A stretch of DNA of 64,000 nucleotides from Adineta vaga (taxonomy: Eukaryota; Animalia; Rotifera). This document shows, piece by piece, positions 45,801 through 63,802 of the stretch. Location: contig CP075495.1 in assembly GCA_021613535.1 (NCBI GenBank), positions 5,456,001 to 5,520,000 of the forward strand, read 5' to 3'. The notes beneath the pieces are model-generated. The model saw only the letters and a program-made list of their open reading frames with translations. It was not told where the DNA came from and ran no database searches. The position numbers and the translations under genes were made by a program. Position 1 is the first letter of the stretch; every line of letters begins with the position of its first letter.

Positions 45801-48800
45801 AACATCTTTCTCATGGAATACTCACTTCTGTTGAAGAGACATGTTGTTCTTTTGAATGCTCTCCGTCAGAGTTGATACTGTGAAATTTTTCACTAAGCGT
45901 CGTTAATGGATGTGTAATCACATCACGAATTATTTCAAAGGTCGTTTTCGTTTCCGCAGATGTATCCACATCTGTCTTGTCGGTCATTGTTGTTGTTTCA
46001 GCTTGCAATATTTCTTGTGTATCTGTTTGTTCAGATTCAGTATCATGGGGTATCACAGTATGTTCTGTAATTGTTGTCAAGGTATTCTGTTCATCATCTT
46101 TCTTTTCTGTTAATGAAAGATGTCCTGTTGCTTGGTCGATCGATGCTATCTCCTAAATATCTCGATAAGTGTAAGAATTATATGTTGTTATTTTAGAAAA
46201 TCACTTACGAATGGTTCAGTTAGTGTTGTGTTTTGTTCAGAAGAAAGAGCAATCGGTGATGACGTTTGATCATCATATTCGATACTATGAGATGGCACTA
46301 AACTATCGATTGTTGTGTCTTCAGTTGATGGTTCAACAAACTAAATTTCAATCAAATATTTATAAGCAAATTTCCTCTAATAATACAACTTACTGGTGTA
46401 TCTGCAGAAGAAGATTCCATTTCCTAAATATTTATAATTACTCATTTATATGAATACTTTTATAACACTTTGAATTTACCGATATAGATGATGATGAAAA
46501 TTCTGCTATTGTTGGCATTGTTTCTTGTTTTTCATTTTGTTCAGTCACGTCTTCAAGAGGGGCACTAGTGGCGTCTGATGATGTCGAAACTGTAGTATCA
46601 GCAATTAAACTAACATCTCGTTCTTTCGATGTAGTATCTGCAGCAATACTAAGTTCATCATCTTTGTGAGCATCTGTGGATGATGCATTGGTTGTTTCTA
46701 CATCTTGAATACTTTTTGAAACTGTTTTTTGTGTATGATCCAATTTCGAAGACGATGTCTCCTCAGGTTCTACGTTTGATTGATCATTGATGTTTTGATC
46801 AGAAGAGCTGATAGTTACTGAAGAGAGTTCTTGTTTATCCGACTGCAAATTGGATATAGCTTCTTGAATTGTTTCACTTATAGCTGTAATTGGTGTTGAA
46901 ATTGTTTCACCAAGACTTTCCAATATTGTTTTTGATTCTTCTAAAGTATCTATCACGGGATTCTCCTATTAAATAATAGTTTAAACTAGTTGACAAAATA
47001 ATTAAACATTTTTATGTTACCTGTTCGATTTGAGTATTACTATTACTGACTTCTACGTTTGTATCACTTTCAGTTTTCGATGGACTAGGTACAGTTGTTG
47101 TTTGCATACTGGAAATAACACTTTGGATAGTTTCAATGAGTGGTGTAATTGGTGTTGAAATAGAATCTCGAAGAGCAGTAAAGAGAGATTTTGTCGTACT
47201 ATCCTGATCTACTTCTAAAGTATTATCCTAATTAAGAAAATACAATATGTTTATAAACATATATGCCGTTGAAAAATAATAAGACTTACTAATAAAAAGA
47301 GCTTATGATCACCCAGATATCCATGATAAACATCGCTGCTGATAAAGCGATTTGTCACTGTATCTGGAAGTGTATCGATCGGACTGACAATTACTGGTTG
47401 TAATACTAGAGCTGTTTTTTCAACAATTGATTCATCAGATTCATGTGATACATTTGCTGGAATCTGTTGAGACGGTTCGACTTTGTGCTCGTCACTCGAT
47501 GCATCTTCATTTGGTTCTATCTTTTCGCATCGTACATCAATAGGACTAGGTGAACGAGCCGATTGTTCAATATCTTCTAAATGTGACTCAATTAAGTTTG
47601 ATGTACTAAGTCGTTGTTTAGAAGAAGTAGATTGTGAATTAGAAGAGTCCATTGCATTAATATGTTGATCAATTGGAGTAGAGGCGGTAATAGACGATTC
47701 AATAGAAGACTGTGAATCAGTAGTTTGATCTTGAGTTATTTTTGATTGATTGGCAGTTGTATTCTCATCACCTATGGTTGTAAACATTGAGGACTCAGAA
47801 GCGCTACTTTCTTCTGTTAAAGTAGGACTCATTGAACTTTCATCATCTTCGTTATCGACAACTGTTTCATCCCATGCATGTTACATGTTTTGCAGATTTT
47901 TTGCTTGATCCATCATCATCTGTGAATGATTCCTCTATTTCATCCATCACGCCTGTATCATTTGGAACGCTTGATAATAAGCCTGTCTGTTGTTGAATAA
48001 ACTCATCGATAGCCGTCTTTTCTTCTGATGTTGATTCATTTGTGATAATAACCGCTGAAGACGTTTGTTCTTGTTGTTGTTCAGGCGATGAAGTCGATGT
48101 ATCCTCAATGTCTTCGCTCTTTATTTCCATGGATGTAGATTCCGTTTCAAGTTGATCTACAACTGACATTTTGGTTTCTTCTGCTGTTTCGTCTTTTGAT
48201 GCTGGCGAAACTTGTTGTTCATCAGTAGAGACAATGGTTGTTGCTTCATTTTGTTCTTCACTTGTTGCTGTCTGTGAATCTTTACTTTCTTCCTGATGTG
48301 TCGATGCTGTTGATAAAACCTGTTGTTCATCTTCCTTTTTATCTGCTGTCGATTCTTCTTGATTTTTTACAGTAGTTTGTTGGTCATCCGCAAATGTTGT
48401 TGTTGCTGTTTCTTCTTTCTTTTCTTCTACCTGTTCATCTTTGGATGCTGACGAAACTTGTTGTTCATTAGTAGAGACAACGGTTGTTGCTTCATCTTGT
48501 TCTTCAATTGGTTCCATCTGCAAATCTTTACTTTCTTCCTGATGTGTCGATGTTAATGATAAAATCTGTTGTTCATCTTCCTTTTTATCTGCTGTCGATT
48601 CTTCTTGATTTTTTATAGTAGTTTGTTGGTCATCCGCAAATGTTGATGTTGTTGTTTCTTCTTCTTTCTTCTCTTGTGTGAACAATGATTCCGTTTTAGA
48701 TTGATCGATGATGGGAGCTTTCGTTTCTTCTACCTGTTCATCTGTAGAGATATCTGTTACATTTTCGTCTTTCTTCTCAGTAGTTGTTAAAGTGTGTTGT

Positions 48801-50382
48801 GGTGTTGACGAGACTTCTGTTTCGCTTTCTTCTTCGGATTCTTTAGTTGTCGATATGGTTTGAGAAACTTCATTTTTTTCCTCTTCAACTCCTGGAAGAG
48901 TTTGATGTTTAGCTAATGGTGATCGCTTGATGTCTTCGTCTATAGATACTGGTTTGTTTTGAGTATCTGATGGTGATAAAATTTCAGTATCGAGATCAGA
49001 TATGGCAGTAACAATTTTATCATAGGAATCTTCACGAATTAGATGATTCGATTTTGCTTGTGATTGTTGTGACAATTGATTTTCAATACGTTGATTTGGT
49101 AAGGTCGGTGAATCATCTGATGACAACTGATAGTCGAGTACACTTTTACCTGGACTCATACTACTTATCGTAGAACTTAATGGCGATACACTAGCAAGAA
49201 CTTCAGAGATTTGATTAATTAATGAATCGTACTTGTTTAGTGTATTTTCAAGAATTCGAATAGGTGCTGAGGCAGCATCAACTAAATTACCAGTAGACGC
49301 CGATTCTTTCTCAATTTGAGATATTACGTCAGTAGCAGGAGTTTCAGGTGATGGATTAACAAATGGCGATGGCTTAGTCACTAGTGATGTTCGAATATCT
49401 TCATCAGGTTGAAAAAGAAGTGTTTCAGGACGACTAAGTGGTTTTTCAACATTTGGAGTTGGTGAAATTGTCCGTTCAATCGTATTGAATTGATTGATGT
49501 TAGATGAAGTTAATAATGGAGTTGATTCAAATGGCTTATACGAAGTATACGATGATTGTGTAGATAATGTTGAGTCAAAGAGCGTAGTATCTATATTGGA
49601 TGGTGGATACGACTGAACAGAATAAGGAGCCATTGGTTTATATATACTTTCGTATGCTGTTTCGAGTCGATTAAAACTTGAGAATGTAGAAGTCGATGTT
49701 GGTGAACGAAGTGACGTTGAATAATTCGATGTAAATGTTTGAGATTCAGGTGAAAAATATTGTTTACTTGAAAATGGTTCGTATGATGTTGTTTTTTCGG
49801 GAATGTAGCTTTCCGAATATGTAAAACTTCCAGACGATGAAGGTAATGTAGGTTTAGTAAATGTAGTCGATCTTTGATTATTATGTATAGTATCAAAATA
49901 AGTTTGGCTCGGTTTCATTGAACTACTTGTAAATATTGGTATATTTGTTGGTTTCAGTGGAATTGGAGCTGAATTAGCAAATATAGAGGTACTTAATCGA
50001 TGGATATGTCTTTTTGGAATTGATTTTGAAGCAAATGTAGATAGATATGCATCAGTATAATCTGAACTTGGTGGTGTAACGGCTTTCGGTTGTTGTTGAC
50101 CTCGCATTTCACCCGTACCGAAAAACGTGACGGTCTTTACTTTACGAGAATAATTATTACTACTATTAATACTGTTATTATCATTCTCATTCCATTGATA
50201 AGTACCTATACGATCATTTACAGGAATCCATTGAACATTTAAACTAATCATAGCTGGACGGCGTCGATAATCACCATAGACCTGATCAAAAATTGTCGTT
50301 TCCGTTCGTGATGAAGATAAAGACTGAGTAGATAGAGAAGGTGTTAATGTAAAGTTATTTCTGACAACAGCAGCACCATCAC
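42885..50382 (-). CDS. Giant Ser/Thr/Glu/Asp-rich IF tail module (~11 exons, roughly 2,200 aa; 4-nt frameshift at 47873-47880)
   Basis: Begins at a phase-1 acceptor (50383-50384) and ends at a phase-1 donor (42883-42884); internal junctions checked are phase 0; low-complexity acidic content. Confidence 0.75.
48190..48672 (-). repeat. Tandem 246-bp (82-aa) in-frame duplication
   Basis: TFADDQQTT(I/V)KNQEESTADKKEDEQQ..STHQEESKD..EATT..ST.EQQVS.ASKDE occurs twice; tcctgatgtg at 48291 and 48537. Confidence 0.9.
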
Positions 50383-50698
50383 CTGTAAACAGAATTTCGA
50401 AAATGAAAACTATCCTTTAGTTTATTAGCTCCTTGCATAAGATCATGCATTTCAATTGTGAATCATTCTTCAATCAATCATTCATTTCATCATGCTTTGT
50501 GTATATTATGCTTCAGCTGAAACTAAGTGTATTGAGAAAGAAAAAAAGAGAATAAAAAGCTATGGCTAGTTTAAAATTAGATAAGAATAGTAAACTGAAC
50601 TAAAAGCAAGGTAAGAAAAATGAATATAGATATTATAATAGAAGAATATATCACTGGCGACAACATGTAAGATATGTTCGATTAAAGTCCAATTCTTG

Positions 50699-51477
50699 TC
50701 AAGCATCAAGTGCTTTGAGTCGTAAAGCTAATGCACCTTCAGGCTCAAGTGTAAACCAATCGTCGATTAAATTTCCATCATCTAAATTATAATTAGCCAA
50801 TGTAACCAATGCTTGACCCATGAAAACTTTTTCAGTTGAAAATAATGAACGATCATTTTTAACAGTCAGATCCAAGGTTTTTAACTTGGCTTCTTCATAT
50901 GTCATATCATATTCGAATGTTTCATCAAAAACTGGTGCTAATGTATCTTTCATAATTCGTGTACGTCGTTTGGTTTTCTTGCGTTTGTCAGGTAATAATA
51001 ATACACGTACATACGGATCTGACAGACTATTCTTATCCGTATTAATCAAATCACGTGCTTCATAAACACGTACAGCAAGTTTACCACGTGTCCGATCATA
51101 ACGTATACCACAACGAATTTGACCATAGCCTTCATCTTTACGTGATGTTGGTAAACGATCACGTCGATCATGTGGATCTTCTAAGGATGAATCATCACCT
51201 TCTGTACCAGGTCGACCACTAGAACTTCGATCTACTGATCCACTTTGATCTCGAAGTCGGTTAAGTGCACTATTACTTCGATTGGGTTCTTCTCGTATTG
51301 TTGGTGGATGTCGATCATTGCTACCGCCACGAATATTATCACCAGATGAACTAGTTCCTGCACCATATCGATAAAATTCTTCTCGACTACGATTTCCGCC
51401 AACATAATCATTACCACCAACACCTCGACGATTTCCACTTGAATCACGTTCAATTGATGATGATCTATCATCTGACT
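50699..51477 (-). CDS. Terminal exon: Arg/Gly/Ser/Asp linker plus extended-synaptotagmin C2C-like C2 domain
   Basis: GQIRCGIRY..KLAVRVYEARDL..SDPYVRVLLLPDKRKKTKRRT..KDTLAPVFDETFEY..LDLTVKN..MGQALV..WFTL. Phase-1 acceptor at 51478-51479; no in-frame ATG before the C2 core. Confidence 0.85.
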
Positions 51478-52623
51478 CTATAAGGAGTACAGTATTCTTT
51501 GTATTTTATTTAATTAAAATGTACGACGATACACAATCACAAGGACATTGTAACAATAACAACGATGACGACGACGACAATGATAATAATAAAGATGATG
51601 ACGAAAAGAATATCGATTACAAATTGTTTCAATTAACAATATTTTCCGTTCGAGTCTCAATCACTTATTCTATGTAAAGAGAGAAAGGTTCCCGAACGGA
51701 AAAACGTTCTCACAAGAATACATAGTAGTAAAATTATATGTGATACTTTTTCAAACACCAATTATTTATTTGTTAACTAACTAAATACAATATTGAATGG
51801 GCGAACAAAATCACAACAATGAACAAGCAAGAGAAGGAAAGAGGAGAAGCGGTGCAAACATGCAAATCTCTGCTCCTTCAAAAGAAAAATATCTTGAAAA
51901 GAATTTTCTCCATTCTTCTTCTTCTTCTTCTTTGTCTGTTGTATGGAAAAAGAAGAAGAAGAGCAAATCTTGTTTTTCTTTTCTTTTCTATACTTTTTCA
52001 ATTTATGAAAAAAAACGAGCGTCTACAAATTGACGAAATACATGTCATTTTCTTGTCATGTCATTTTCTACTCGTTTGGTTTGGAATGAAAAGAGAAGAC
52101 TCTAATGAAGGAAAGAAAAGCAAACAAATGTTTAGTGTTCCACATTGCTAACAGAAATTAAACGAAACGAAACGAAACGAATACACTTGACTAGCGAATA
52201 AAACTAAGTTATATTTATATGTATATTGTATTTCAAGAGAATATATTGGAATCATGATGATAATCATGTTCTGCCAGTCGTACCTAGAAAAATAAATCAT
52301 AGGATGGATGATGGATGGATCGATAAATGATTTCATTTCACAATTATTCTTTCTGCTCGATTGAAATTCTAAAATGAATCTCGCTTATCTTTTAGACGAA
52401 AGATTGACATTTAATCGTATTTATATGTAATCATTACTCTTTTCTTTTGTCAAGGTTGACCTTCTGTAATTATCGATAAGTTTTTTCAAACTTTTAACAT
52501 ATTTCTTTTTGAAGGATAGTGCAAAGAAAATACAAAGCAAGGATAAGAAGATATCCAGCATGCAATATGTGCATTATATCACAACGAGCAACATTACATA
52601 GTGCATTTTATTTTTTCGCTTAC

Positions 52624-55241
52624 CTTGACCACCACTCGTTGTTCGATAAGAACGTGAATATGAATATGATGAAGCACCGGCGCCACCGCTACCACCACCG
52701 GCACCACCACCGGCACTAGCTCCGCCACCGCTGCCGCCACCAGCACCACCGGAAGCAGCGAAATCTGATCGTGCTTGTTCTTCAACATGAGAGACTATTT
52801 GTTTCAAACCTCCTCTGAAAAGATGAAATCACTTTTTTTATGTATATCTAAATATTCTTTCAATCATACCTATTTTCTTCTCCTTCCAATAGTTTTCTAT
52901 AGATTGCAATTTCTGCATCAAGTGACGATTTCGTTGTTACCAATTCATCATAATCACGTCCTAATTCTTCTAATCGAGCTCGTAATTCTTGAATTTCACG
53001 ATCACGTTCATTGGATGCTTGAACACCTTCACGTCGTTCAATTTGTACCAGTTCTTCTAATTCTTGAATACGATTTTCTAATTCTCCATTCTAAATTCAA
53101 ATCATTTTGTGATATTATTTTCTGTTCGCCTCTACGATATAATATATATTTACTCTTTGACGCATAGCTGAAATATCTGTTCGTGAATCAGTTACTAATG
53201 TTCGTAATTTTTTAATTTCTTCTCGTTCACGAACACTTTCTGGTCCTTCAATTGCACGACGAGCTTGTACTTCTTGTACCTATTTTAAAATTAAAATCTT
53301 TAAAATATCGATATAATAATTACAAATTTATATCTTACCGCTTGTGTAACTTTCATACGATACCAGGATTCTAATTCATTACGTTGTTGACTATTAAGTT
53401 GCTCATATTCTTCTCGAATATCACGTATAGCATTGGATAATTCATGTTTGAAAAAATTCGAAGGATCCAAAGCTGTTCCAATTAGATTCGCATGTTTTAA
53501 TTCTTCAATTTCTTGTGCATGAATTTGTTTTAAGAAATTAATTTCTTCTTCTAGACTTTGTTTTTCATTTTCTAATTGAACACGAGCAATTGTTTCATGA
53601 TCTAAATCTTCTGTGACACGTTGAATATCTAAGATAAGCTTTTGAGATTCAGCACGATAACGTTTTTGCTCATCTTCCAAATCAACTAAATACGAAAAAG
53701 AAGTTTGATATTTTATGATTAGATAAATAAATATGATATAAATTAATTTACCTAAACGACGTCGAAATAGATTAAGATCTGCTTCATTGTCGGCTAGTTG
53801 TTTTTGTAATGCTTCAACTTTTTGTCGATCGGCATCTCTTGAAGCTAATAAAGTTTCATATCTATCGAAGAAATTATTAAACAATGTAATAAGAAGAATA
53901 AGATATATATGAATGAATATGAACATACTTGTCTTTATATCTTAATGTTTCTTCTTCGGCACGTTTAGCACGAAGTTCCGCTGTTGCTCGATCTTTTGAA
54001 GTTTCATCAATAATACGACGAGCTTCACGTATTTCAACTTCATACATATCCTTAACTTTACTTGTTTCTGAACCCCATTTTCCCCTATTGAAATAATTAT
54101 ATAATTCATCAAAATAGATGAATATAGATTTACCGTAAATGTTCCAATTCAAGTTGAAGCTTCTTATTGAGTGCTTCCAAATATCGCACACGTTCAATGT
54201 ATGATGCAAAACGATCATTAAGATGACTTAATTCTCGTTTTTCACGTTCACGATTTTCTCTTTAATAAAGAAAAAAAAATAGTTGATTTTATTTTATTCC
54301 TATACACAAGGGAATAGCTAAGAATAGTATTTCTTTTCAATTAGTCAAGACAAAACACCTATGAAATCTCTAGAGATATAAATTTTTCACTAAACACTTC
54401 ACTTATGTAGAAACTAAAACTTCTCCCATGTGTAACTCTTGTACCATAGAAATTTTTCAAGCTTAGATCTATAAGAAAAGTTTTTTTCCTGACACGACAA
54501 CCTTCGAATAATATTTAAATTATGATGGAAAAAAATTGTTTTTTTTTCTGTTGAAGACAACACGCTTATATCACAATTCCTCAAACTATTATTTTTCAAC
54601 AGTTGTATTGTTTTTGTTTATCATACTAGTTGTTAAATAACATTCTGGACATGCACACATCCATGTCGGCAGCATCTAACATTAGTCTAACATATGGTAT
54701 CATGCGCAGTTGGACTTTCTCTTCACACTATCCCCCCCGATCAAATTACATCCTTATGAGAAGAAGGCGGGTATCACTACTACTGTAGTAGTCAGTGATC
54801 AAACTAGCTAATCAGAGAACGAACACGCGTACATATCGGTGATTAATCGATTCATTTTTATGCAATAGTACGATGGAATTTGAACAGAACATGTATAAAA
54901 AAAATTTTTGCTCATTTAACTTACTGAATAGCTACAACAGCCGCTGATTTGCCACCTGGTTTAAGTGGAACACCAGGACCACTACCATAGGCATAGAAAC
55001 GTTCCATCATAATATTATTGGATGATGGTACAACTCGATTTGTTGTAATATTTGTAGGACGTGGAGCAATTTGTGAACGATAATGAATCGTTTCTTCTTC
55101 ATCTATTCGTTGCGGTTGAGATGAAGATGAAGAAGGATCACGACGTTGATCTCGTTCATCACGATCACCTCCACGATCATTACCACCACCACCACCACCA
55201 CCACGACGATCAGAATCTCGATTATTACCACGATTATCCAT
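52624..55241 (-). CDS. Cytoplasmic intermediate filament protein 1, head and rod (tail supplied by downstream alternative exons)
   Basis: [16 protein letters not shown], long coil 1[33 protein letters not shown], Gly-rich spacer, then donor CAAG|gtaagc at 52624/52623. Confidence 0.95.
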
Positions 55242-58200
55242 GGATTGAAGAAATTTTGGTGAAACTAAAATAATAAATGAATCCAATGATATTTCTTTAT
55301 AATAGAATATTCATCGTAAATAATTCTACTTGCCCTCTTTTCCTATGAAAATATATAACGGAAAGCAAATTTATAAATAATGAGCGTTCGATGCAAGAAA
55401 TGCGTAGACTTCGATCTTTAGAAAAAAAATAATATATGCTGACGTTGAAACGAGGTTTTTTTCGAAGAGTTTCCTCTGGGAAAAGTGGAAGTTTTTTTTT
55501 TATTCTCCTTCTTCTTTGTTTCAAACCACAATAACTAGCACTAGCCACCGAAGAAGATCAGAGACACAAATCGAGAAAAATACCAAGCAATTTCTCTAGA
55601 CTCTCTCCTTTCCTTTCTGTCTTACCGCGTTACACAGAGACGAGCAATAATAACTCTTTTCTGCGTTTACGTCTTCTCTTTTCCTTGGCTTCTGCTACTT
55701 GTTTCTGTGAACAAAATATGCGAAACCCATCCTTTGCGGCGATAACTGCGGTAAAAGTGGCATTTCCATCTCCTTCGCCTTTCTCTACTTCTCTTTTTGC
55801 CACTAACATATAAAAAAAAAGAAACTGGTTCAAACTTCCTCTTATTCGCTTCGATAGTAAAAAAAATAAAAAGAAAAAAATTGTGTTTTTTTTTCTTTCA
55901 TTACTCTTTTCTCTTACTCTCTCTCTCTCCCTTGTACCCTCTTCTCTTTATAACAAAGAGAGTTGAAGAGATGTGGTAATTTCATCTGTGATGCATCCTT
56001 TCCCTTTCTCTATCTTTCGATTGCGTGATGATGTACCACAGTGCGTAAAGATCAGTGGTATGTCTATTTATATGATGTGCACTAGCCATCATCATTCAAT
56101 AACAAATAGAAGCAAATTTTATGCAACGATCTGTAATAATAAAATTATTCCTAAATGAATTCGTAGGCGTATATATATATATATGTATGTAGACGGAAAG
56201 TAATGAACGGATTATTTGAATATTCGATCTGAAGAGGGAGAAAAAGAGGGAAGAATGAAAAGGGAAAAAACGAAGAGAGACACATTTATAATAGAAAAGA
56301 CCAAGGGACTGACTAACTCTATTCGGTTAGTTAGAGCAAAACCAATTGAATCTCGAATGCTAAATAGGAGCAGAGCAAAAAAAACACAGAAAAAGAGAAA
56401 CTTTACAGTGACATGTATCTATGAATAAATGATAAGAATGAATATTTCATTTAAGCAAGAAAGCAATCACATAGGCATTGAATGATTTCTGTCTATATAA
56501 GACTATATTGGTGATTGAAAGCTTTTCTTCAATCAACGTAAAACAAAGCTAAGAAATTCACATATCAAATATTTCTAACGACAACATAACAACTCCCTAT
56601 TGACTTTCGATCGTTGACAGAAGATGATGATGATAGATATATTACTTGTAAGTACATATATATATATATATGCACCAACTATGATAAACAAGATGTCTTG
56701 CCTTACGCTGAAAATTCATAGAAAAATAAACACCTGCTATACAATCTCTTCACTATCTAATTACATATTTGAATTAAATTCTACTAGATATAATTAAAAT
56801 TTATTCGAACACGCTATAAGATCATTAAGGAAAAGAAAGAGTTTGTTTCTTCTAAATATATAATATACCATTTCCCAAGTGGAAAATATTTAAATAAATA
56901 GACGACCTTGTAGTAAAAACATATCTATGACGTAATTCTCTTGATAACAAAATTATCTATGGAATATTTTTATATTGTTTATTTATCATTCTTTTACTGA
57001 TAGATGTATTAAAAAAACAAGTCACTCAATATTATTAAACAAGAACTAATTATCAATGTGCATGTATGCATATATTAATTCTTGAAAAATCAATATTCTC
57101 ATTACAAATAGATTACACATATCTATAGACGAATTCATAAATATTTCTTCTACAAATTCTCTATATATAGAAATCTATCTATAGCCTATAACAATCTTTT
57201 TTTATTGACTATTTCAATGACATACCGTAAGGCAATACGTGTGATCAATAGATGTGTCTACCAATCTATCTCTGTCAATAGAGACAAAACTCAGTCCGTA
57301 TTTAGTTGTTTTCTGCCGCCAGACACGATTTTTTCAATACACTGATGATTACATTAGTAGTAGATACGAGTTCGAAGAAGAGAGAGAGAGAAATCCAAAG
57401 AGCTTGTTCCTCTTTTTTTCTCCTCAAAGATTGGCGATTAACGTGTCGAAAGAAAAATATTTTCTCCCCCCTTTTTGCTTCCATTATCATCATTTTCGCC
57501 TTCTACCGTTCTTTCTTTGGCATGTATCGTATATTTTTGTTTGTTCTATCCATAACGCCAAATAAACATAGTTGTGTGTCTTCAACTCGACAAACGTCAT
57601 ATACTCAGGATGGTGTCACTCACAATCATCCTTATGGAACAGAAAGACAAAATAACAACAATATATATGTCAGATGAGAAAGAGATATAACAATTAAGAC
57701 AGTAGGTAGAAACAAAAATCATTAAGATATAGTTGATTTTGGAATCTAAGATCAATGCCATGTTAATATAATGAAGAGAAAATATTTTCAATCTTTTTCT
57801 TTTCGTCTGTTTGGCGTCAGGACTACCGATAAAGTATTTGACAACAATTGTCTCATTAGCATCAGCATTCTTTTTCTTGGACGATGTCATTTCCTGATTG
57901 ATAGGAAAACGAAGAAGTGTGTCTATATACTTGATGCAACGTCGTCAACATTCAAGTATGAAAGAATAAAAGCACAGAACTACCAATCGGAAGACCCGAA
58001 ACTAAGCACGTACTTTCTCCTAATGAAATCTTCTAATATTAAATGATCGTGCGAAAGCATTTTGCGAGAGAAATATGAAGAAATATTGCTTCAAATAAGC
58101 ATATCCTTAATTCTTGAATTCTATCAGATGAATGGTGTCTTTGAAGTAAATATGTCACTGGAAAAGACAGATAACTTAACAATGATCTTTTAAAAGAAAC

Positions 58201-59316: not shown

Positions 59317-61179
59317 TTAACTTCCGGATGTATATTCGCGACGTGATGACGTTTGCGAATATGATGCACCACCACTGCCGCCACCACTGGTACGGCCAGG
59401 ACCGGTAACTAAACTACTTATTCCAGCATTGCTTGTTCCTGATCCGCTGCTACTAATAAATGTACGTGAAATTGTTGTTGATCGACCACCACCACCACCT
59501 GAATAGGAGATGGAACCAGCAACACCGGAGCCACTAGTGGCTCTTTCAGCTTCCATACGACGAGCTTCTTCAACAACATGATCAACAATTTGTTTCAAAC
59601 CTTCACGATTATTTGTTCCTTCAAGTAATTCTCTGTATGTATTGATTTCTTTTTCTAATGATGTCTTCATATTTGTCACTTCTTCATATTCTTTCTGTAA
59701 TTGTTCTAATTTACGACGTAATTCTTCAATTTCAGCAGCACGTTTTTGTATCACACGACCACCTAGATAGAAAAGAAAACAATAAACAAAATTGTGTATC
59801 GAATCAAAAAAAAAACATCTCGAAGTATCATTTTATGTACCGTCATCACGTTCTTGATCAATATGTAATTGAAGTTCTCGTATGCGATTATTTAATTCTT
59901 CATTTCGTGCTTTCATATGTGCAACTTCATTGCGTGTTGTCAATAATGTTGTTCGTAATTTTTCTTCTTGGACGCGTTGTTGTTCACTTTGAATTGGATC
60001 AAGATCTGGTTTTTGATGGCGAAGAATCAATTCATTGTATGACATCATATATCGATTGTGTAAATCAGCACGTTGTTGATCATTCAAAGCTTCAAATTCA
60101 TTACGGATATCACGAATAGCTTGAGCTAATTCATTACGGAAGAAGTGTGATGGATCCAAATTAACATCAACAACAGTCTTCGATCGTAATTCGTTCAAAT
60201 CAGCTTCATCTAAAGTAAAAATGAAAAGAATGGTTTTAGCCTTTTATTATTAAGTATGTTTTGCTTACGCATTTGTTTAAGCATGGCAAGTTCATCTTCA
60301 AGTGCCATTTTTTCTGTATCGAGTGAACTTTTAACAAACGTTTCATTTTGAATTTCATTTTGTAAACGAGCAATTTCCGAAGCAAGACGTTGAGTTTCAG
60401 CCTTATAACGTCGTGCTTCATCTTCAAGATCTCCTAAACGGCGTCGAAATAAATTAATTTGAGCTTCATTTTCAGCAATTTGTTGTTGAAGACGATCAAT
60501 TGCTGATCGATCAGTTTCGCGGCTGTTTAAAATTTCTTCATATCGTTTACGATAACGACCTTAAAGAGAAAGAAAAGAAAAGCAATGTATATATGTAAAT
60601 AAGAAACAGATGTTTGTAAAAATTACCAGCTTCTTTTTCTGCATCACGGGCTTTAACTTCTGCTGCAGCTCGATCACGTGTGGTGTCATCAATAAGTTTC
60701 TTGGCTTCGTTCATTTCAACTTCATACATTTCTTTGATTTTCGATGAACCTTGACCAGCTTTATTTTGTAAAGCTTCTAATTCCAATTGTAATTTACGAT
60801 TTTGTGCTTCAAGAAATCGTACTTTTTCAACATATTGAGCGAATTTGTCATTTAATTGACATAATTCACGTTTTTCTCGTTCACGTGTTTCATTGACAGC
60901 AACTAATGCTGATGAACCACGATTTGGTCGTAATGGAATGCCAGAAAAATTTCCTAGGCCAGCAATAGATGCTAAACCAGAAATTCCGGCACCAAGACCA
61001 CCTGTATTAAATCCTCCACTACCGCCGGTAGTTGAATAAGATTGATACATGCGTGTCATGATTCCTGATGGACCACCTGAACGACGTTGAACATTTGTTG
61101 AACGTGGTGTGATTTGTGATTTGTATGAACTGTATGAAGACGAACCAGTTTTGGCAAATTCATCATCGTATCCTTGCAT
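59317..61179 (-). CDS. Cytoplasmic intermediate filament protein 2 (short Gly/Ser tail, no LTD)
   Basis: LNDKFAQYVEKVRFLE, ELAQAIRDIRNEFE, LEKEINTYRELLEG; three introns. Confidence 0.95.
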
Positions 61180-62242: not shown

Positions 62243-63802
62243 TTAGCGATGCGGTGAAACATTTCGTGAAGTTGAAGGTGATCGACCACTAAGACCACCA
62301 GCAGATGAGTATGATGTTGAATAAGTGACTTCACGAACATTATGAGAACTACTTGGACCTGATGTATTTCTCAATAAACGTAAATTAAGTGAATCGAGTA
62401 ATGAACGACCACGATTCATTATTTTTTCTGCTTCTTCAGCAAAATGTCGTAGACCAACTTGATTATTACCACCTTCGAGTAATAAACGATATCGACGTAT
62501 TTCTTCTTCTAATGTTGTACGATATTTTTCTAAATCATTTATATAACCTTTTATACGATCAATTTCTTCACGATAACGTCTTTGTTCGTCAACAAGACGT
62601 TGATCTTCATGATAGGTTGTGGATTGTATCTGTTGACGTATATCAGCTATTTGTCTATCAAGATCTTGATTTTCCATTTGTAAGCCATTAACACGACCAC
62701 GTATATCAGATATACTTCGAGTGATTTCTCGAATCTTTTCTGTTTGCCATTGTGATTCAATCGGTTCTTTTGGTTGATGATATTCAATCAACGCACTAAC
62801 TTTTGCCTGATAATAATTTTGTAATTGTTGTTGCTGTTGATCGGTAATTGCTTCAAATTGTTTACGTATTTCACGTATAGCAGCTGTTAATTCACTTTCA
62901 AAGAATGGTGCTGGATCAACATTAGCAATAGCTACTTTGGAACGAAGTTGTTCAACATCAAATTTATGTGCAGTATCTAATGCTTTTAATTCTTGTTCAA
63001 GAACAGTTTTCTCTGCCATAAGTAATTGTTTTTGTGTTGCTTCATTAGCTATTTCAGAGATAAGATTTGCAACATCAGCACGAATACGTTGTAATTCAGC
63101 ATTGTATAGTGTAATTTCATCATCATTATCAGCAATTATTTTACGAATTAATTCAATTTTTTTTTCGAGATCAATGATTTTTTCACGTAATTGTTTTAAT
63201 TGACCTTTAGCACCATTGATTTGATCTGGTCGTTGAGCATTAGTTAAACGTTGTTCAGCTTGTTTAAGACGTGCTTCTGCTTCTTGTCGTTTACCTTGTC
63301 CTGAACGGACATCATCATCCATTCGTTTTAACGTTTCTTCGGCTTCTTTTTTTTCCCGTGTAATTATTTCACGAATACGTTGCAAACCAATACCTTTCTT
63401 ATTTCGTATATTATCCAAATCACGACTAAGTTTTCGATTGACTGCTTCTAAGTAACGAATTTTACCAATATATTCAGCAAATCGATCATTCAATTCAGCT
63501 AATTGACGTTTTTCTTCAGCTCGTTGACTATTAAATGGAACTAATGCCCAAGAACCCATGCCACCACCACCAACCGTAGTACGTAATGGTACAGCACTAC
63601 TTGACATCGAGTGAGATACACTCATCTTTGATGTTACACTTCGATTTCCTCCACCTAAATTTTTCACTGGTCGAGTGATGATCACTTGTCGTGGAGTAAT
63701 TGCTGACATATAGCCAACAGATCCAAGTGTGTCATATGTTGTATTTGTACGCGGATCTGCTGTATACATTTCTTCACGCTGTACATCATAGATAGTTGGC
63801 AT
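62243..63802 (-). CDS. Cytoplasmic intermediate filament protein 3 (intronless, no LTD)
   Basis: 519-aa single ORF: LNDRFAEYIGKIRYLE, ELTAAIREIRKQFE, LEEEIRRYRLLLEG. Confidence 0.95.
   Translation of the reverse strand: MPTIYDVQREEMYTADPRTNTTYDTLGSVGYMSAITPRQVIITRPVKNLGGGNRSVTSKMSVSHSMSSSAVPLRTTVGGGGMGSWALVPFNSQRAEEKRQLAELNDRFAEYIGKIRYLEAVNRKLSRDLDNIRNKKGIGLQRIREIITREKKEAEETLKRMDDDVRSGQGKRQEAEARLKQAEQRLTNAQRPDQINGAKGQLKQLREKIIDLEKKIELIRKIIADNDDEITLYNAELQRIRADVANLISEIANEATQKQLLMAEKTVLEQELKALDTAHKFDVEQLRSKVAIANVDPAPFFESELTAAIREIRKQFEAITDQQQQQLQNYYQAKVSALIEYHQPKEPIESQWQTEKIREITRSISDIRGRVNGLQMENQDLDRQIADIRQQIQSTTYHEDQRLVDEQRRYREEIDRIKGYINDLEKYRTTLEEEIRRYRLLLEGGNNQVGLRHFAEEAEKIMNRGRSLLDSLNLRLLRNTSGPSSSHNVREVTYSTSYSSAGGLSGRSPSTSRNVSPHR

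Follow-up and report, generated by a model that had tools for sequence, protein, structure and literature searches.

The C2C domains of the extended synaptotagmins E-Syt2 and E-Syt3 bind phosphatidylinositol 4,5-bisphosphate (PI(4,5)P2) of the plasma membrane constitutively (PMC7889955), and a preprint (10.64898/2026.10.13.758694) makes the same statement for the patch of E-Syt2. E-Syt C2C domains are active also at the contacts between peroxisomes and the endoplasmic reticulum (ER) (PMC7889955). On the side of the intermediate filament (IF) proteins, the tail of the protostome cytoplasmic IFs contains a lamin-tail Ig domain (PMC4448529, PMC10125929), the CaaX box is missing from all rotifer lamins examined (Stick and Peter, PMC10125929), and copepod 'lamins' have been described in which the classical tail is lost and a PDZ domain is found at the N-terminus (Kollmar 2015, PMC4448529). 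Here we describe a gene of the rotifer Adineta vaga, in which an IF rod is joined by alternative splicing to a C2 domain of the E-Syt C2C type. It lies on the minus strand of a stretch of 64,000 nucleotides (assembly GCA_021613535.1, contig CP075495.1, positions 5,456,001 to 5,520,000), called the window below; all coordinates are positions within this 64-kb window, whose composition is 31% G+C and whose introns are short and of the GT..AG type.

Cytoplasmic IFs reach membranes via adaptors such as plakins and the desmosomal and hemidesmosomal plaques, and lamins via a farnesyl group. To our knowledge, no IF subunit has a built-in folded phosphoinositide-binding domain. The Adineta locus is one gene with two isoforms, one of 537 residues without and one of 790 residues with the C2 domain. 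Eight coding exons (55241-52624) encode the head, a lamin-type long rod and a Gly-rich tail, and the donor at the end of the eighth is spliced to either of two terminal exons. The features of the 3' part are the following.

51478-52623, minus strand: intron of the C2 isoform, enclosing exon A; 1146 nt, GT..AG, joint 51477/52624
51539-52283, minus strand: alternative terminal exon A; joint 52624>52283, contigs running from 52280 to between 51539 and 51577
50699-51477, minus strand: terminal C2 exon; 117-residue Gly/Ser/Arg/Asp-rich linker, C2 domain, short C-terminal helix, TGA
50747-51085, minus strand: C2 domain (Pfam PF00168), residues 131-243 of the exon translation
50957-50998, minus strand: polybasic stretch LLPDKRKKTKRRTR; Lys or Arg at 8 of the 10 residues following LLPD
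50500-50698, minus strand: 3' untranslated region (UTR) of the C2 isoform; in each of the four runs the contigs on the C2 exon stop at 50496-50512, with a depth of 0 over 50300-50480

Splicing was read from the contigs of four runs (X1, X5, X14 and X15), belonging to four studies, over positions 50300-55700. The seven small or medium-sized introns of the IF part were spliced out at GT..AG sites in the RNA contigs, and RNA depth was 0 in the bins 54282-54824, which lie within the 665-nt intron. The runs are RNA, since all seven of these introns were removed and the 665-nt intron had no depth. In X1, X14 and X15 exons 1-8 were found in single contigs of 1599-1726 nt, which ended exactly at 52624. 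The joint 52624>51477 (1146 nt skipped, GT..AG, minus strand), proposed in the sequence-only reading of this DNA, was present in X1, X14 and X15, that is, in three studies, with 22-30 letters on the short side. The second joint from the same donor, 52624>52283, was found in X1, X5, X14 and X15 (it is listed as 52621>52280, with the cut displaced by +3; in X5 its short side has 48 letters). In the stretch 50300-55700 these are the two ends seen. Among the RNA contigs of the four runs the acceptor at 51477 had no partner but 52624, nor did any contig show a loose end at this site, as a spliced leader would leave. The C2 exon is expressed and is spliced to the IF donor.

At the C2 junction the end of exon 8 (GGT CAA G/GTAAGC, the slash marking the splice site) and the start of the C2 exon (ttatag/AG TCA) yield the split codon GAG, and the frame is continuous. 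The acceptor of exon A at 52283 reads ttttctag/GTACGACTGG; the coding part of this exon is limited to G-TTGRT-stop (52283-52264), and the remainder is 3' UTR, whose 3' end is not sharply defined. The contig depths of X15, a poor measure of abundance, add up (38.8 for C2 plus 18.2 for exon A versus 58.2 for the body), as expected if one donor feeds two ends, and by the same poor measure the data fit a C2 form that is at least as abundant as the short form. Alternative 3' exons leading to different tails have reportedly been seen in invertebrate IF genes before, for example in Helix aspersa.

A non-coding block within the 3' UTR of exon A (51748-51893, minus strand) is 82% conserved with a related locus (L010) and partly conserved with another (L001). 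An AATAAA lies in it, as does GGAGCAGAGATTTGCATGT...CTTCTCC, which could form a hairpin; RNA contigs still reach to about 51540. An Rfam search of 50300-55700, including this block, gave no match. An acidic, Ser/Thr/Glu-rich repetitive open reading frame (ORF) of 794 residues (47867-50251, minus strand) starts about 250 nt past the end of the C2 transcript, beyond the stretch without RNA depth; it may be a separate or operon-like gene just as well as a further tail of the IF gene.

The C2 exon (51477-50699) is 779 nt long including the TGA. Its frame is open from 51505 and closed upstream by the TAA at 51508-51506, and the first ATG of the frame is residue 175 of the exon translation. The exon cannot be translated alone, because there is no ATG ahead of this residue, which is already inside the C2 domain. 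The Pfam match of PF00168 is full length, covering profile positions 1-104 with E 1.9e-22 and 79.9 bits (gathering cutoff 22), and the domain sits in the last 141 residues of the exon translation. The sequence-only reading had claimed a 779-nt terminal exon in frame with the IF rod, encoding a C2 domain with a very basic strand, with no in-frame ATG ahead of the C2 core and with no SMP or other C2 domain between rod and C2. In all these points it agrees with what was found: the frame runs through the split codon, the basic strand is LLPDKRKKTKRRTR, tblastn searches with eight E-Syts against the whole 64-kb window matched the C2 exon alone, Pfam scans of the exons gave no SMP, and tblastn with the C2 domain detected no second copy in the window. 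As a terminal exon of the gene the C2 exon is real; it is not the sole end, and the nearer exon at 52283 had been missed.

The C2 domain is of the E-Syt C2C type, as judged from sequence comparison. The top single-domain match among solved structures was 2dmg with 86.5 bits, whereas synaptotagmin-1 C2A reached 55 bits per domain. The record of 2dmg reads 'third C2 domain of KIAA1228'; we take KIAA1228 to be E-Syt2, and 2dmg thus to be the third C2 domain of E-Syt2. Homologues of the C2 exon were searched for among 1.84 billion cluster representatives (50% clustering), and the best 150 matches were considered. Ten of these are proteins of about 660-890 residues that align best via their last C2 domain, and all ten consist of SMP_LBD and three C2 domains, that is, they are extended synaptotagmins. 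Trees were computed with C2 domains cut from E-Syts and from tandem-C2 (synaptotagmin-like), FYVE_2-bearing (rabphilin/Slp-like) and PDZ-bearing (RIM-like) proteins. A quick tree of 104 C2 domains united the C2C domains of all ten E-Syts with the IF-C2 rows and with 13 orphan C2 ORFs in a single clade, which had a support of 99 in the SH-like approximate likelihood ratio test (SH-aLRT). A careful tree of 77 C2 domains, whose bootstrap had not fully converged, again placed the IF-C2 domains, the orphan C2 ORFs and the ten C2C domains in one clade (ultrafast bootstrap (UFBoot) 99, SH-aLRT 95), with the C2A and C2B domains of E-Syts and the synaptotagmin-like, FYVE_2-bearing and PDZ-bearing C2 domains outside. 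The sequence-only reading had named a failure to group with E-Syt C2C as a finding that would speak against it; the domain does group there. As the branching order within the clade is not resolved, the tree supports the assignment to the E-Syt C2C type and gives no donor or direction. In tblastn the similarity to E-Syts reaches about 70 residues into the linker upstream of C2, an extent that speaks more for an origin in the 3' part of an E-Syt gene than for a merely convergent fold. A captured E-Syt last exon is a plausible origin of the terminal exon.

The AlphaFold2 model of the domain has a mean pLDDT (predicted local distance difference test) of 92.8 and shows seven strands of at least three residues, a two-residue strand at 58-59 and the C-terminal helix. 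In a Foldseek search of the PDB, synaptotagmin C2A and 2dmg were the best matches (TM-score by query 0.77-0.81), 2dmg having the highest sequence identity among them (38%), and the probability was 1.00 to C2 domains of synaptotagmin, E-Syt2 and PKC. In the alignment the polybasic stretch corresponds to the basic KxKxxKRKT found in the E-Syt C2C clade, and its content of Lys and Arg is even higher than in the E-Syts. With regard to the Ca2+ ligands of synaptotagmin-1 C2A, D172, D178 and D230 are kept, D232 is replaced by Ser and D238 by Lys; these numbers come from our own count of the Syt1 sequence. Loop 3, KNDRSLFSTEK, fits the pattern KNxxSxFSxxK of the E-Syt C2C clade and not YDFDRFSKHD of synaptotagmin, and a KNDxSxFS loop is common to this C2 domain and E-Syt C2C.

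Thus E-Syt2 and E-Syt3 C2C share with the C2 domain described here the subfamily (99/95), the C-terminal position, the polybasic strand, the incomplete set of Ca2+ ligands and the similarity in the linker. In contrast to E-Syts, the IF-C2 protein has neither SMP domain nor ER hairpin, its N-terminus being an IF head, and it lacks C2A and C2B, so that the C2 domain is single. The domain is attached to a filament rod rather than to an ER anchor; it would tether cytoskeleton to membrane, where E-Syts tether the ER, and no lipid transfer is implied.

The arrangement is conserved in related loci, which comprise one Logan contig (L001) and metagenome or assembly contigs, together about six distinct sequences. 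In L001, L009/L043, L010-L012, L040 and L041 the IF exons are followed in the same order by the tail exon, the C2 exon and finally a homologue of the long acidic ORF; the C2 exon of these loci is 71-82% identical to that of the window. The donor, CAAG/GTAAG or CAAG/GTATG, could be read in L001, L009/L043, L010-L012 and L040, and was not located in L041. The phase-1 acceptor of the C2 exon is also kept (ttatag/A; tgtag/A in L010-L012), and so is the acceptor of exon A, ttttctag/GTxCGA, followed by a stop after 5-6 codons (L001, L009, L010, L041 and L043). Between the window and L001 the ratio of nonsynonymous to synonymous substitution (dN/dS) was 0.034 for the C2 core, whose synonymous sites are nearly saturated (proportion of synonymous differences, pS, 0.71), and 0.41 for the linker; these values indicate that the C2 core is under strong purifying selection and that the leash evolves more freely. 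The acidic ORF at 47867-50251 is syntenic in every related locus, with 38-59% identity and alignment from residue 1. In L011 and L012 a second, apparently intron-poor IF gene lies upstream. L002 and L004 had been considered as spliced transcripts; both turned out to be collinear with genomic DNA and hence uninformative.

P0008 and its relatives form a more remote set of C2 ORFs, with about 50% identity to the C2 domain of the window; in the tree this set is the nearest neighbour of that domain, with weak support. One ORF of the P0008 type, P0188, is found on an 11.6-kb JGI contig, with two Filament ORFs of the same strand 2.9 kb upstream of it. Because of this position the IF-C2 fusion may be older than the close relatives show and may exist in another rotifer-like lineage. 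Other contigs carrying C2 ORFs of this group (P0008, P0013, P0038 and P0073), namely L003-L006, L044, L045 and L046, are too short upstream to show the context. On the P0188 contig the C2 ORF is upstream of a LolA_2nd_metazoa gene, and L044 has the same C2 and LolA part.

Further ORFs with C2 domains came to light among the matches. A second group with terminal C2 domains similar to E-Syt C2C (P0059, P0065, P0035, P0100 and P0108) lies behind long Asn/Ser/Glu-rich low-complexity stretches; the residue make-up of the P0059 group resembles that of the AT-rich, rotifer-like loci of the IF-C2 gene. On the 4.7-kb ENA contig of P0157 the ORF directly upstream of C2 shows a weak LIM-domain match. It may be that several different genes of these animals have acquired a C2C-type exon. 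P0002, P0005, P0006, P0007 and P0023 (3300-3900 aa) are predicted giants with about 18 to 20 or more tandem C2 domains, and the 307-kb contig L020 has at least nine C2-coding segments within 13 kb.

The IF part of the gene consists of the following exons, for which the Pfam searches were made with single exons, one by one.

54925-55241, minus strand: coding exon 1, head domain; RNA contig over 54925-55265, joined to exon 2; ATG at 55241 as the inferred start
54133-54259, minus strand: exon 2, rod start with helix-initiation motif; Pfam Filament E 2.1e-11, profile 2-37; joints 54925>54259 and 54133>54083
53929-54083, minus strand: exon 3, rod, coil 1A/1B; Pfam Filament E 2.6e-4, profile 42-87; RNA joints
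53752-53861, minus strand: exon 4, rod, bulk of the 42-residue lamin-type insert of coil 1B; RNA joints
53336-53685, minus strand: exon 5, rod; Pfam Filament E 3.4e-19, profile 99-200; RNA joints
53154-53276, minus strand: exon 6, rod; RNA joints, open frame continuous with its neighbours
52870-53090, minus strand: exon 7, rod end with helix-termination motif; Pfam Filament E 1.5e-13, profile 242-312; RNA joints
52624-52814, minus strand: exon 8, Gly/Ser-rich tail stub, ending at the common phase-1 donor CAAG/GTAAGC, where two RNA joints start

Together with the C2 exon the exon lengths (317+127+155+110+350+123+221+191+779 nt) give 791 codons including the stop, and all phases agree. At 55265 there is a loose end: an IF-body RNA contig of X1 extends by 108 letters that do not match the adjacent DNA, therefore at least one further 5' exon must exist, and the ATG at 55241 is unproven as the first one. 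Four rod exons match the Filament profile (PF00038) and together span its positions 2-312, and both IF hallmarks can be read in the translations, LNDRFA.YI..VR.LE in exon 2 and YRKLLEGEE in exon 7. Coil 1B has 53 residues where the profile has 11 positions (88-98), and the excess of 42 residues, or six heptads, identifies the coil 1B insert of lamins and protostome cytoplasmic IFs. A lamin-tail (Ig-fold) domain was not found with Pfam: exon 8 had no match at all, which means that no lamin-tail domain follows the rod, and the terminal exon matched C2 alone. Neither C-terminus (...LKALDA and ...GTTGRT) has a CaaX box. On these sequence features the gene is a protostome-type cytoplasmic IF gene with a rod of lamin length and no lamin-tail domain. 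Two more IF-rod genes lie in tandem upstream of it (59317-61000 and 62843-63523, minus strand), with 33-71% identity between their rod exons and those of the IF-C2 gene. The nearer one has a Gly/Ser-rich tail end; tblastn with C2 against the window detected no C2 exon behind either of them.

With the cytoplasmic IFs of molluscs, annelids and nematodes the protein shares the helix-initiation and helix-termination motifs and the 42-residue insert in coil 1B; unlike them, it has a Gly-rich stub followed by six residues or by C2 in place of the lamin-tail Ig domain. Farnesylated CaaX lamins resemble the C2 isoform in combining a long lamin-type rod with a C-terminal membrane anchor, putative in our case. 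The anchor predicted here differs in being a folded lipid-binding domain and not a lipid modification, and in its presumed target, the plasma membrane; nuclear lamins moreover have a nuclear localization signal (NLS) plus a lamin-tail domain, which this protein does not. Alternative 3' ends can give anchored and unanchored isoforms in lamins too, to go by general knowledge, an example being lamin A/C and the B-type lamins. The copepod PDZ 'lamins' are a comparable rarity, in that an IF rod is without its classical tail, which was lost, and has gained an unrelated signalling or binding domain, yet there the gained domain is an N-terminal PDZ and not a C-terminal C2 obtained by alternative splicing.

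Our reading of the locus is that one IF gene supplies plain subunits and subunits with an E-Syt-type phosphoinositide anchor, which would co-assemble into a network pinned to the plasma membrane; we give it a probability of roughly 0.7. Splicing of the common phase-1 donor to the nearer exon gives a 537-residue plain filament subunit, and splicing to the farther exon a 790-residue subunit equipped with a 117-residue flexible leash and C2. From the homology to E-Syt2/3 C2C we infer that the domain binds PI(4,5)P2: it would bind acidic phosphoinositides, chiefly PI(4,5)P2, via the polybasic strand and with little or no need for Ca2+. Filaments containing the long subunit would then be studded with leashed membrane anchors and, by analogy, the C2 tail would tether them to the plasma membrane from its cytoplasmic side; how densely the network is anchored would be set by the amount of the long isoform relative to the short one. 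As a candidate structure one may speculate about the intracytoplasmic lamina beneath the apical membrane of the syncytial epidermis of rotifers.

Several points weigh against this reading. The contigs with the 52624>51477 joint carry only 22-30 letters on the short side, which is below the 31-letter rule of thumb. Logan contigs are understood to be built from 31-letter words, in which case a contig would end 30 letters past a fork, as expected where one donor feeds two acceptors; we regard an exact overlap of 30 letters, found at a canonical splice site and in three studies, as good evidence for the IF-C2 junction. The ATG and the C2 stop do not occur together in any one contig, so that it is the donor common to both ends on which the long-range phasing depends. 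The C2 domain retains three acidic loop residues, and some dependence on Ca2+ is possible. A polybasic strand can also be an NLS or bind nucleic acid or other acidic partners. Finally, the evidence is drawn from DNA sequence and RNA contigs.

The alternative that survives best accepts the fusion and assigns the C2 domain a role other than that of an anchor at the plasma membrane: it might hold the filaments at another membrane, for instance the nuclear envelope as a substitute for the CaaX box, or act as an NLS, or be an assembly module that senses proteins or Ca2+. The lack of CaaX in rotifer lamins (PMC10125929) leaves open how IF networks are held at membranes in these animals, KRKKTKRRTR in our own reading resembles a classical basic NLS, three of the five acidic loop residues are kept, and E-Syt C2C domains are known to be active at peroxisome-ER contacts as well (PMC7889955). 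On the other hand, no lamin-tail domain follows the rod and no NLS is present outside C2; the closest characterised relatives, E-Syt2/3 C2C, bind PI(4,5)P2 of the plasma membrane (PMC7889955), and loop 3 fits the Ca2+-independent E-Syt C2C pattern and not the DxD of synaptotagmin. We consider such a role unlikely, though it deserves to be kept in mind.

That the C2 exon is a separate unit, with its own promoter in the interval 51.5-52.6 kb or as a trans-spliced gene of an operon, the IF-C2 junction being minor read-through, is very improbable. Lack of expression or a separate promoter had been named in the sequence-only reading as what would overturn it, and a few observations seem to point that way: the 1146-nt intron is far longer than six of the seven other introns (49-67 nt, the first one being 665 nt), there is some RNA depth over 51478-51573 in X1 and X14, and X5 has depth on the C2 exon while its IF-body contigs are missing, missing contigs having been given no weight. 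Exon A, however, accounts for the depth in the 'intron': all four runs, X5 among them, show it joined to the IF donor. A stand-alone mRNA could not encode the domain, since there is no in-frame ATG between the stop at 51508-51506 and residue 175; the sole joint at 51477 goes to 52624, with no loose end; and the phase-1 donor and acceptor are conserved together in about six distinct related sequences. P0001 and P0008, considered as stand-alone C2 genes, were rejected as such: their initial 'Met' is a TTG, picked when a gene caller made for prokaryotes was run on eukaryotic DNA.

Hardly credible at all is the idea that the C2 isoform is mere noise, a spliced product of a decaying captured exon that is not translated or has no function: the isoform is known from RNA and DNA alone and public gene callers yield only fragments of it, but a dN/dS of 0.034 in the C2 core with nearly saturated synonymous sites, an exon, acceptor and phase intact in every related locus found, and a junction present in three studies with a contig depth at least equal to that of the short isoform speak against it.

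Returning to the reading of one gene with plain and anchored subunits, IF-C2 is a new domain architecture built from two well-known parts. The claim that no such architecture has been described, made in the sequence-only reading, agrees with a full-text literature search, which returned nothing relevant on IF and C2 domains in rotifers or on the combination of PF00038 and PF00168, and with the absence of an IF rod from all of the best 150 matches of the C2 exon among the 1.84 billion cluster representatives. A homologue search restricted to proteins of 142-451 aa gave no IF-C2 protein either, which is a weak negative as this length range excludes 790 aa, and the ESM Atlas gave tandem-C2 families only and no IF-C2. 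An annotated 790-residue IF-C2 protein could have escaped through the length range and the 50% clustering. The searched literature on the intracytoplasmic lamina together with IFs or keratin contained nothing relevant; the sole paper naming both is morphological and does not give the composition of the lamina, so that this composition is essentially unaddressed in the literature searched.

If the proposed function is true, this would be the first IF known to have its own lipid-binding domain. If the C2 tail binds PI(4,5)P2 like its E-Syt relatives, it would represent a third and much simpler type of coupling between filaments and membrane, next to adaptors and the farnesyl group, controlled by alternative splicing. 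With its E-Syt-type phase-1 terminal exon placed behind a phase-1 donor and maintained under strong purifying selection, the gene would also be a clean example of how a new architecture arises by exon capture. We put forward, as a tentative and rather doubtful generalisation, that in bdelloids and probably in rotifers more widely an IF binds the phosphoinositides of the plasma membrane via an E-Syt-derived C2 domain and welds the intracytoplasmic lamina to the apical membrane, with the splice ratio tuning the attachment. The gene is a concrete candidate for the membrane link of the rotifer intracytoplasmic lamina and, if the proposal is true, would offer molecular access to the syndermatan intracytoplasmic lamina, a structure that helps to define the phylum and is biochemically uncharacterised.

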